From Macrostomum lignano (lineage: Eukaryota): DNA of 64,000 bases. The stretch lies in NCBI GenBank assembly GCA_002269645.1, contig NIVC01000019.1:1488001-1552000 (forward strand), given 5' to 3'. The notes below the pieces were generated by a model, which worked only from the letters and a program-made list of their open reading frames with translations, did not search any database and was not told where the DNA came from. Both the position numbers and the translations under genes were made by a program. Of the stretch, positions 54,503 to 57,500 are shown one piece after another. The stretch's first letter is position 1, and each line of letters opens with the position of its first letter.

Positions 54503-57500
54503 ATGAACTCAGGAGGCGGCGGGAGCCCGTTCTACCACTGCCAGCTGTGCACCAAAGCCTACTCCTCGGAGAAGAGCCTCAACAAGCACATGCGCAAGAA
54601 GCACGGCATCGGCAGGGATCAGCAGCAGATCCATCGATCCCCGAGCGCGAAGCCGAGCAAAGCTTCTACTGAAGAGACGGTGCAGTCGCCGAGTAAAATC
54701 CAGGTGAGCCGTCCGCCAAAGCCCGCACCCAAGCAGTCTCAAGCTGATGAAGATATGGCGATCGTCTGTCCAGAGTGCGGCGGCACAATTAAAAGCAAAA
54801 AGGGCGTTGCTAAGCACTACATGTGCTTTCACAACATTGTGTATTCGGCCTGGAAGGACGGCTGGTTCGGCCGCAGCGTCCGCCTGATGGATCTGACTAA
54901 GGCGATGATTGGCAGGTTTTATGCCAGCGGCGGCGGTGCCCTTCGCGAGTCTCTGGCGAAGTGCCCGGATGCGGAGCCTGGATCTGTACCGGTAGAGATG
55001 GAGGACGAAGAGCGAAGCCAGAGGCCTGAGTCAGATGAAGACAAAGAAACTGATGAAGCCGTTGAAGCAGACGCTGTCCAACTGGTGGTAGACGAAGGCG
55101 ACTCTGCTGAAGAAGATGATGAAGAAGGCCCCCTGGTATTGGATGGAGCTGATGAGGACCAGCAGCCAACTTCTGGCCTGTGGCTGGACAGAAGATCGGT
55201 GAAGCCTGCAGCCGCCGTACCCGAAGCTGCTCCCATAGTATCAATATCTCGCAGACGTCGTTCAAAGCTGAAGACTCGCTTGGCTGTAACTTCGCCATTT
55301 TTCCATGGCAAGGATGGCAAACTGGAGTTCAATACAAATGAAGACCCGCTTGACATCAACTGCCCATTCTGCATCGTGCACAAGACCACTATCAAGGGCC
55401 TGGCCAAGCATTGTGTAAATCATCACCCGGAGGAATATTCCAACTGGAAGGATGGCAGCTTTGGCAATGTTCAACTGCGCTACATTCGGCCAAGCGAACA
55501 GCAACTCAGCGATTCAATCAGCTGTTTCAATTCTACGCAAGTAAAGCGAAATGCAAAGAAACAGAAACAGAATTCTGAGACAAAAACGCAACAGAAGCAA
55601 TTGGAGCAGCCAAAGCAACTAGATAGTCAACAAAGGGCGGAAACTCTGCCTTTTTCACCTGGATTGAATCTCATAAATCTTGTTCCGTGTTCAGTTTGTC
55701 ACAAGATGGTGCGGCGGCAGTCTCTGGCCGGGCACAGTGCCACGCAGCACCCAGAGCAATCGGATGATCCGTCAGCTGGCCCAGCCATCAGCGTTAGCAA
55801 AGTAGAATCCTCGCCCAGTAGCAGAAGAAAATCTGAGCTGATGAGCGCCTTCGACGACGACAAGCAGGCCAATCCGTGCCCATTCTGCGGCGAGCTGATC
55901 TTCTCCAAGGGCATGGGTAAGCACTGCATCTACTTCCACAATGACCAGTACCAGGAATGGAAGGCTGGAAAGTTTGGCAGCGTGCCGCTCAGATTTGTCC
56001 CGAGCCAGATCGCCGGCACCGCTGACAGCGACTGGGCGGTAGACACTTCAGGCAGAGCATCTAAGAAGCGAGACTCGACAATGAATACTGGCATGAGCAT
56101 TGTCTTCCCTACTAGCGAACAGGCTCCAGACTCCTGGATCACGGAGGCTCCGTCGACTAAGACTCCCAGTGGACGCAGCGTGACCCTTCGGATTAAACCC
56201 AGCTCAGCAGATCAAGGTGCTTCAATTCAGCACACTCTTGAGAGCAAAAGCAGCTCCTCCCCATCCTTTGTGCTAGGCGTAAAAGAAGGGATTAATTCCC
56301 AAGGTCATGAGGATGATGATGAGGACGGCGCCTTGCTCATCGACTGCGATGACGAAAGCGCCGACGAAGGCGACATTTGCGACGAAGATGCCGCCTTCAC
56401 TTGTCACTACTGCGATGCCACTTTCGACACGTCAGACGAACTGAAGCTGCACTTTTCACAGAAGCACATCGAGGAAGGGGCAAAGGCAACCTTCGGCGAC
56501 CAACAAGACAGTAAGCAAGCAACCAGCAAGCAGTTAATTAGCAGTCGCTGCCATTCATCTGGTCGCTTCATCTGCGATATTTGTCACACGCCCTACCCGT
56601 CCAAGAGAAGTCTGAGTCAGCATTACCGCATTCACAAGTTCGACCGACTGTCTTCGAGCTCATCCGCCCTCGGTGGTGCAACTGGAAGCAGCAGTACTGA
56701 ACAGCGCTCAGCTGACATCGACTCTAGGAGCATGGAACCTGGAGAGTTGGCTTCATCTTTAGCGCGTCGCACATCTGAAGCTCACAGACCAACTGCGAAT
56801 TTGGACTCAAAGTCGCTTCAGAATGACCCATCAAACGGTGATGGTCGCCTTCGAATGTCATTCAATGCTGACGTTTTAGATGTTGCGGCTCTGTTCACAG
56901 CGGAATCAAAAGTAACTTCTTTAACAGCTGATTGCCCGAAATGCTGCAAAACATTCAGCGACAAATGGCTTCTGCTGGATCACATGACTCGCTGCTTTGC
57001 TGAGCCATTGTCCCGAGGAAAGCTCGATGCGAAAGATTTGGCTGCCCTGGCTGGCATCGAGGATGACGCTGACACCAAAAGTTCAAGTCCACCAATCGAA
57101 AAAAGCCATTTTGACTACGAATCGCAGAAGATGCTCAACGAGAACAAAGAAGAGGTCTACAAATGTCGATTCTGCGACAGAACCTTCAAAACTTCGTCAC
57201 ACATTCGCAACCACGAGAAATTCTGCAGCAACGACAGCACGACTCGCGTTGTCTACGCCTGCGAGGTGTGCAAAAAGCAGTTCTACATGAAGTGCCACCT
57301 GGCAGTCCACATGAAAGTCCACAAGATGTCGCTCGAAAACGACCCAGAGTCTGGCGCTATCAGCGGCAAAGCTGATGAAAAGTCAACACAGCCTGAAAAG
57401 TTTGAGTGCAAGCAGTGCGAAAAATCGTTCAGTTCCAGCGCCAACCTGCTCAAGCACAAGGTTGTGCACACCAACTCCTCGGTCAGATGCAAGACGTGCA

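Follow-up and report, generated by a model that had tools for sequence, protein, structure and literature searches.

A large multi-zinc-finger gene of the flatworm Macrostomum lignano carries three copies of a Cys2His2 (C2H2) zinc finger that is followed, each time at the same distance, by a tail of the form WKxGxFG. Judged by sequence, this module is a C2H2 finger with a C-terminal extension, restricted to one lineage and absent from Pfam; it elaborates a known finger type and is not a new class of domain. The gene is located in a window of 64,000 nucleotides (NCBI GenBank assembly GCA_002269645.1, contig NIVC01000019.1, positions 1,488,001 to 1,552,000 of the forward strand), and all positions given here are those of the window. 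An earlier sequence-only reading of the same DNA had put the module forward as a candidate new domain. Of this proposal, the part concerning the tail stands, as it is uncatalogued and found in M. lignano only. The rest does not: the core is canonical C2H2, the Y-x2-W at the start of the tail recurs elsewhere, and a new domain class is not indicated.

Three modules with one pattern

The pattern CPxC-x11/12-H-x4-H-x3-Y-x2-WKxGxFG was found at 54767, 55361 and 55877, in the same plus-strand frame and at these three places only, using regular expressions on all six frames of the window. The strings quoted in the sequence-only reading were recovered exactly. The tail alone (WKxGxFG) also has three occurrences in the six frames, all of them in these modules, and in every copy it is placed exactly six residues past the second His of a C-x2-C-x11/12-H-x4-H finger. 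A chance occurrence of the tail was rejected: the expected count, given the six-frame composition of the window, is 0.0095, and at least one tail appeared in only 2 of 20,000 protein shuffles. The protein has about 16 fingers recognizable by regular expression, and the tail is present on three of them and on none of the other ~13, so that the modules do differ from the remaining fingers, as had been noticed before.

Sixteen positions are invariant across the three copies (C, P, C, K, G, K, H, H, Y, W, K, G, F, G, V and L; alignment A3). The consensus drafted earlier is accurate overall, except for its last residue in copy 1, which ends in SVRLMDL and thus retains V-x-L without the final Arg of VxLR. 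At the DNA level, the agreement between copies is mostly confined to the codons of conserved residues, which points to an old, selected repeat, and a recent DNA repeat was rejected on the same grounds. The linkers between the modules are acidic or low-complexity, in agreement with the first description.

All three copies show the ligand spacing of C2H2 fingers (C-x2-4-C-x12-H-x3-5-H), here as C-x2-C-x11/12-H-x4-H, both by regular expression and by alignment. The classical core Phe, four residues after the second Cys, is missing, with I, K and I in copies 1 to 3, and the Leu position (helix +4) is retained, being occupied by V, L and M. On the helix, nearly all copies and paralogues carry K, G and K at +2, +3 and +6 (alignments A3 and A7), positions at which classical fingers differ from one another in order to read bases. 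WK has the same Lys throughout, and most copies have the Arg of LR. Upstream of the Cys pair, the alignment of the three copies shows eight residues that are acidic or polar, none of them aromatic. A second Cys/His set after the finger was not found in the alignment; the WK…FG tail stands there instead.

Distribution of the module

A hidden Markov model (HMM) of the three copies (A3), a search that had been suggested with the original proposal, was scored against 1.84 billion representative proteins without a word index. The representative protein clusters matched by this HMM are referred to as P0001, P0002 and so on. At E<=0.001, 65 proteins were retrieved. The whole profile, including the tail, was matched only by P0001, P0002, P0003 and P0007 (profile positions 1-51 or 5-51, and 3-51 for P0007). 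All four clusters are from M. lignano, with no more specific names than “C2H2-type domain-containing” or “hypothetical”. The remaining 61 matches cover profile positions ~7-33, that is, the finger only, and belong to assorted multi-C2H2 proteins from beetles, fungi, a hemichordate, a scorpion and metagenomes. A relaxed form of the tail, [WFY][KR]xGx[FYW]G, occurs in none of these 61 non-Macrostomum finger matches. By these profile matches, the distal tail KxGx[FY]G-x1-2-VxLR appears limited to M. lignano paralogues among the 1.84 billion representatives.

Module counts differ between the paralogues, with three in P0001 (1503 aa), four in P0003 (1127 aa) and a single one, corresponding to module 2 of the window, in P0007 (450 aa). 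Near-identical extra copies exist for each M. lignano paralogue. They fit the recent whole-genome duplication known in M. lignano (PMC5704211, PMC10733133). Homology searches using a word index, with the N-terminal 533 aa, the three-module alignment or a 254-column alignment of the conserved segments of three paralogues as query, gave no match. These negatives are false, as near-identical and paralogous M. lignano proteins are present in the same collection. A literature search on the M. lignano locus tags and UniProt accessions of these proteins found no paper.

Part of the module has a wider distribution. At least seven unrelated non-Macrostomum clusters (P0012, P0015, P0017, P0034, P0038, P0039 and P0056) have Y-x2-W at the same offset, although this recurrence is a biased estimate, because the profile used to retrieve them favours Y and W. 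These uncharacterised “CPFC…H….HP.EY..W” fingers, of metagenomic and eukaryotic origin, share C, C, G(+3), H, H, Y and W with the modules at identical offsets (A7), but none of them has K-x-G-x-[FY]-G-x1-2-V-x-L-R. Pfam families above threshold were present in all six scanned clusters (P0056 was outside the scan), namely zf-Di19, zf-C2H2, zf-BED or Zn_SUZ12. The zf-BED scores of distant finger relatives reached 49.1 (P0012), 33.2 (P0038) and 29.0 bits (P0062), above the cut-off of 20.6. Since the seven clusters share these offsets, and the six scanned ones are filed under known families, the core with its Y..W extension appears to be a wider, uncatalogued flavour of Di19/BED-like fingers, in which only K-x-G-x-[FY]-G-x1-2-V-x-L-R is Macrostomum-specific.

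One of the seven clusters, P0017 (a Logan contig, 600 aa), has an N-terminal GIY-YIG / T5orf172 region and, in residues 391-575, three fingers of the form CPFC-x12-H-x4-H-x2-EYQQW[HL]K..K[FL]VPEKEF. Its W-x-K-x2-K-[FL]-VP is the nearest non-Macrostomum approach to the tail.

Scores against Pfam and PDB

No family in Pfam-A reaches its gathering cut-off on the isolated copies. The best scores of the window copies were 20.9 bits for zf-Di19 (cut-off 27.5), 18.3 for Zn_SUZ12 (28) and 11.3 for ZNF512_C2HC (27). For zf-Di19, copy 2 scored 20.9 bits and copy 3 14.5, and copy 1 had no match. The paralogue modules are sub-threshold as well, with 21.1 and 18.7 bits for zf-Di19, 14.4 for ZNF512_C2HC and 15.0 for zf-BED. 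For Zn_SUZ12, no score of the gene or its M. lignano paralogues exceeded 19.8 bits. Neither zf-C2H2 (PF00096, cut-off 25.2 bits) nor zf-BED (PF02892), the two profiles with which a comparison had been proposed, matches the isolated window copies at E<=10, and the tail peptides alone gave no match in Pfam. PDB sequence profiles and Foldseek cover the 24-31-residue finger core only.

The sequence-only reading had recognised no family with the WKxGxFG tail. When the full module, tail included, was compared with the existing families, it stayed under the cut-off in all of Pfam-A, and within the HMM search it was found in the four M. lignano clusters only. A Pfam family scoring over the full module, the result named beforehand as refuting the proposal, did not turn up. 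The core itself, going by its residues and spacing, is a canonical-spacing C2H2 finger of the Di19-like sub-type “CPFC...G[LV]..H....H”. Where this sub-type occurs in related proteins of metagenomes and eukaryotes, Pfam assigns it to zf-Di19 and at times to zf-BED or Zn_SUZ12.

Gene structure

A single plus-strand open reading frame (ORF), 54398-58786, holds all three modules. Its translation is ~98% identical, within aligned blocks, to P0002, which is UniRef100_A0A1I8GYC8 of Macrostomum lignano, a free-living flatworm, and the window is thereby confirmed as M. lignano DNA. A three-exon structure was derived by comparison with P0002, with the splice junctions read from the sequence. Pfam reports 11 zf-C2H2 stretches in the ORF of exon 1 (E=5.5e-27). 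The features of the gene, all on the plus strand, are:

54503..58663, plus strand: exon 1 of the multi-zinc-finger gene, with ATG at 54503 and GT donor at 58664; 1387 aa, including all three modules.
54539..54604, plus strand: N-terminal classical C2H2 finger without tail, CQLCTKAYSSEKSLNKHMRKKH (regular expression); 85% identity to P0001 over the segment.
54743..54937, plus strand: module 1, with acidic N-cap, finger and tail; core 54767-54886, CPECGGTIKSKKGVAKHYMCFHNIVYSAWKDGWFGRSVRL; conserved downstream MDLTKAMIGRFYAS.
55262..55495, plus strand: module 2, with conserved N-terminal extension SKLKTRLAVTSPFFHGKDGKLEFNTNEDPLDIN (55262-55360), finger and tail; core 55361-55480, CPFCIVHKTTIKGLAKHCVNHHPEEYSNWKDGSFGNVQLR.
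55688..55750, plus strand: degenerate finger without tail, CSVCHKMVRRQSLAGHSATQH (regular expression); collinear in alignment A4 with the intact P0003 module CPICGKQISAEGITNHCSIYHLKEYNDWKEGKYGRVS.
55853..56011, plus strand: module 3, with acidic N-cap DDDKQANP, finger and tail, then FVPSQI; core 55877-55993, CPFCGELIFSKGMGKHCIYFHNDQYQEWKAGKFGSVPLR.
56402..58489, plus strand: C-terminal set of ~11 dispersed classical C2H2/C2HC fingers without tails (regular expression; Pfam zf-C2H2 and zf-C2H2_4 stretches).
58808..58909, plus strand: exon 2 (FSAADAYLCTECEKSFPSLDLLGRHLSSAHEIQE), with one further classical C2H2 finger; it matches the C-terminal part of P0002, with AG acceptor before 58808 and GT donor after 58909.
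59420..59509, plus strand: exon 3 (LYKSRTSVAHSGARKRKSVPMATSYSGTG and stop); it matches the end of P0002.

Conservation extends beyond the cores. The flank 5' of the module 2 core (55262-55360) follows SKLKTxLAxTxPFFxxxxGxxEFNTNxxPLDIN, common to all four paralogue groups, and the flank 3' of the module 1 core (54887-54937) follows LTKxMIxxF[YH]. Given these conserved flanks, the true domain boundaries may be wider than 40 residues.

The gene model of P0002 omits residues 303-398 (window 55409-55696), so that module 2 is cut after GLAKH and joined to the next finger. In the window, the reading frame is open throughout 55409-55696. The omission is probably a gene-model artefact, and it leaves one of the three modules concealed in the public entry.

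Conservation and history among paralogues

The paralogue proteins are 37-49% identical, and synonymous sites would be saturated. Constraint was therefore gauged by the identity of modules versus linkers, in alignment A4 of the N-terminal halves:

Module 1: 74% identity to P0001; 29% to P0003, where this module is degenerate.
Module 2: 75% identity to P0001; 64% to P0003.
Module 3: 93% identity to P0001; 76% to P0003.
Intervening linkers: 12-16% identity to P0001; 13-14% to P0003 (50% for the 24-residue linker 3).

The modules are conserved islands among divergent acidic linkers. Across multi-module paralogues, the same module position is 69-92% identical, in contrast to 28-46% between modules within one protein. 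Because the modules are closer to their paralogue counterparts than to their neighbours in the same protein, the internal duplication predates the gene duplications.

In 10 of the 11 modules from the four M. lignano paralogue groups, the tail follows the second His after a constant number of residues, with no indel. The eleventh, module 1 of P0003, has kept the spacing, with a degenerate tail (FKEGFLG). The family pattern CPxC-x11/12-H-x4-H-x3-[YF]-x2-W-K-x-G-x-[FY]-G-x1-2-[VI]-x-[LI], free of indels from the second His to the aromatic-Gly, is present in all three window copies and in seven of the eight modules of P0001, P0003 and P0007, the exception again being module 1 of P0003.

The tail-less finger at 55688 aligns where P0003 has the intact third of its four modules, with an identity of just 18%. 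This finger is probably the remnant of a fourth module which has lost its tail in the window gene, a homology suggested by its position. In P0001, the corresponding finger is wholly lost. The tail-less finger at 55688 and its absence from P0001 indicate that modules were lost as well as kept.

Predicted structure

The structure prediction proposed earlier was performed with AlphaFold2 (AF2). With A3 as input (module 1), the best model had a mean predicted local distance difference test (pLDDT) score of 85.9. It consists of a beta-hairpin, the finger helix (residues 19-29) and a second helix (31-38, N-I-V-Y-S-A-W-K), with coil beyond, and its block mean pLDDT is 92 over residues 31-40, the proximal tail. 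A finger with a second helix is thus predicted by one confident model; the other models did not reach this confidence, and the distal tail was returned as coil. A low-confidence model of the extended module 2, usable for secondary structure only, has the same two helices as that of module 1. Searching the module 1 model against PDB and BFVD with Foldseek aligned 26-31 core residues to C2H2 fingers (GAGA, KCMF1, HIM-8, CTCF), with E-values of at least 0.7.

Proposed role of the extension and alternative explanations

The reading that we favour, with slightly better than even confidence, is that the modules are paralogous copies, ancestrally four, of an extended Cys2His2 finger in a large nuclear-type multi-zinc-finger protein, and that they act by a clasp and anchor mechanism. 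The finger is predicted to fold as a beta-hairpin and a helix round one zinc ion. The chain would kink at the second His and continue as a second short helix, with Y and W on one face, and the G-x-aromatic-G turn and the V-x-L-R-[FY]-[VI]-P segment would then fold back. Because the canonical core Phe is missing, the tail aromatics most likely serve as a substitute hydrophobic mini-core, that is, as a structural clasp. Other Di19-like fingers also have Y-x2-W at this offset, which fits such a structural role. All modules probably bind one generic ligand via their basic face, either a nucleic-acid backbone or a common acidic partner. A single generic ligand, as opposed to diversified base reading, is suggested by the near-invariant K, G and K at +2, +3 and +6, the invariant Lys of WK and the Arg that most copies have in LR. 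The modules could thus be multivalent anchoring units on acidic disordered linkers, and the C-terminal classical fingers could give specificity.

Several observations weigh against this extended-finger reading. All full-module homologues come from one species, so that the conservation described here is conservation between paralogues only. The degenerate module 1 of P0003, and the tail lost from the fourth module of the window gene, indicate that some copies can be dispensed with. Of the five AF2 models of module 1, a single one was confident, and the other four had pLDDT values of 51-71. For the extended module 2 (87 aa, 4 sequences) the mean pLDDT was 54.6, with the tail below 50. The packing of W and F on the finger is inferred, and the structural role suggested for the tail has the sequence and the AF2 prediction as its basis. 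Foldseek (PDB, BFVD) gave no significant match for the tail, and hence no precedent for a clasp.

Some of these observations would suit a tail that is a separate short linear docking motif (WKxGx[FY]G…VxLR[FY][VI]P), recruiting a partner protein independently of the finger. The distal tail falls below a pLDDT of 50 in the extended module 2 model, four of the five module 1 models are not confident, the distal tail is Gly-rich with no regular structure predicted, and no structural neighbour in Foldseek spans it. Yet in 10 of 11 modules Y, W, K, G and the aromatic-G follow the second His at fixed distances with no indel, despite the indel-rich linkers, the tail is never found away from the finger, and the best AF2 model reaches a pLDDT of 92 for residues 31-40, all of which make a free-standing motif rather unlikely. 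The modules could also be protein-protein fingers of the Di19/KCMF1/RNF125 “CPFC” type, for example for a peptide or a ubiquitin-pathway partner, and not nucleic-acid binders. This is a minor but appreciable possibility. The zf-Di19 profile is the best Pfam similarity of the finger (20.9, 21.1 and 18.7 bits), peptide-bound KCMF1 zinc domains are among the top Foldseek core matches, and the fingers stand singly, their surface residues nearly invariant and their conserved aromatic tail exposed. However, all Di19 scores are below 27.5 and involve the first finger of the two-finger profile only, the Foldseek E-values are at least 1, the rest of the protein resembles a nucleic-acid-binding multi-C2H2 factor, and the conserved K, K, K and R would equally suit phosphate contacts.

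Within such a multi-C2H2 protein, and with conserved basic residues on tail and helix, the modules might be sequence-specific single-finger DNA readers like GAGA factor, the second Foldseek core match, with the tail as an accessory DNA-contacting arm. We consider this very unlikely, as K, G and K at +2, +3 and +6 in nearly all copies could not read different sequences. Moreover, the Foldseek match spans just 29 columns, with E=3, and the accessory basic regions of GAGA are N-terminal, not C-terminal (PDB 1yui), whereas the arm of the modules is C-terminal. An origin from transposase-derived BED fingers is extremely improbable. The sequence-only reading had been reminded of BED fingers by the H-P-E-E-Y part, a resemblance that comes down to a shared H-P-x-E-Y flavour. 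The relatives P0012, P0038 and P0062, distant members of the sub-type, do exceed the zf-BED cut-off, and the third module of P0003 scores 15.0 bits. Nevertheless, this best paralogue score is under 20.6, the window copies have no zf-BED match at E<=10, the eight residues before the Cys pair show no aromatic signature, and neither the protein nor its paralogues have a transposase domain in Pfam. A BED or transposase origin was rejected for the lack of a zf-BED match in the window copies and of a transposase domain. Finally, we see a small chance that the modules are an autonomous new domain, born in macrostomid flatworms by C-terminal extension of a Di19-like finger, in which the W/F/Y tail would go beyond stabilising the finger and form a ligand site of its own, such as an aromatic pocket that takes up a modified residue or a surface on which unpaired bases stack. 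If so, the proteins would be chromatin or RNA regulators peculiar to flatworms, a family without counterpart in other organisms.

Should the tail truly belong to the finger, structurally or functionally, as in the extended-finger reading that we prefer, the modules would be a clean case of a C2H2 finger gaining a lineage-specific extension and then being multiplied within and between genes. A small new family entry would then be justified. The practical impact is modest, as the family is known from a single species, its core is canonical, and many protein-specific C2H2 variants are already catalogued. M. lignano is a regeneration and stem-cell model with RNA interference (RNAi) and transgenesis. 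With these tools, the function of the modules is open to testing in the animal itself.

Genomic surroundings

With its large exons and many microsatellites, the window is eukaryotic in character. The second intron of the gene (58910-59419) and the downstream region 60546-61762 contain long TCTA-type microsatellites, which are read as IYLSIYLS… in the ORF lists. Further long microsatellite or minisatellite arrays are found at 4385-5106, 6009-6611, 7327-8108, 9649-11350 and 50955-51863, the last of which coincides with a GC skew of about -0.4 at 48-52 kb. Neighbouring exons, unrelated to the modules, are located at 43204-45480 (minus strand), 27527-29874 (minus), 851-1546 (plus), 61748-62821 (minus) and 11663-12205 (plus). 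Their products include a full protein-kinase domain (759-codon ORF with a Gln-rich N-terminus), a second kinase over two exons and a third kinase fragment, as well as a Cys-loop ligand-gated channel and the C-terminal region of RAB3GAP2. No Rfam family matched in the window.

Comparison with known zinc fingers

The best Pfam similarity of the finger is to zf-Di19 (PF05605; Di19, KCMF1), with which the modules share the CP[FY]C start, the C-x2-C-x12-H-x4-H spacing and the Gly and Leu of the helix. They differ in that the scores are under 27.5 and the match is confined to the first finger of the two in the profile (positions ~2-30 of 54). Di19 has no WKxGxFG…VxLR tail, and the modules have no second zinc-binding unit. 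ZNF512/ZNF512B (PF21276; PDB 2ctd, 2gqj) resembles module 2 in the helix pattern CPxC…(K)TIxGLxKH (TIKGLAKH versus TIEGLKKH) and is among the top PDB profile matches (ranks 2 and 4, E=0.005 and 0.013). In contrast to the modules, its fourth ligand is Cys (C2HC) instead of His and it has no tail; the match is to the finger only, with 11.3-14.4 bits versus a cut-off of 27.

The Zn domain of SUZ12 (PF23320) is also an extended CPxC-type C2H2 finger, and module 2 aligns in Pfam to positions 18-64 of its 70-position profile. Scores of 13.3-19.8 bits are nonetheless below the cut-off of 28, and no homology past the finger was found with hhalign. A SUZ12-like Zn domain was rejected, as hhalign against human SUZ12 450-505 (sequence checked against PDB 6c23) aligned 24 finger columns with a probability of 8%. 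With the classical zf-C2H2 fingers (PF00096), the modules share the ligand set, the spacing and the predicted fold of a beta-hairpin and a helix. Unlike them, the modules lack the core Phe and a PF00096 match, stand isolated rather than in TGEKP-linked arrays, and bear a conserved C-terminal extension of ~20 residues.

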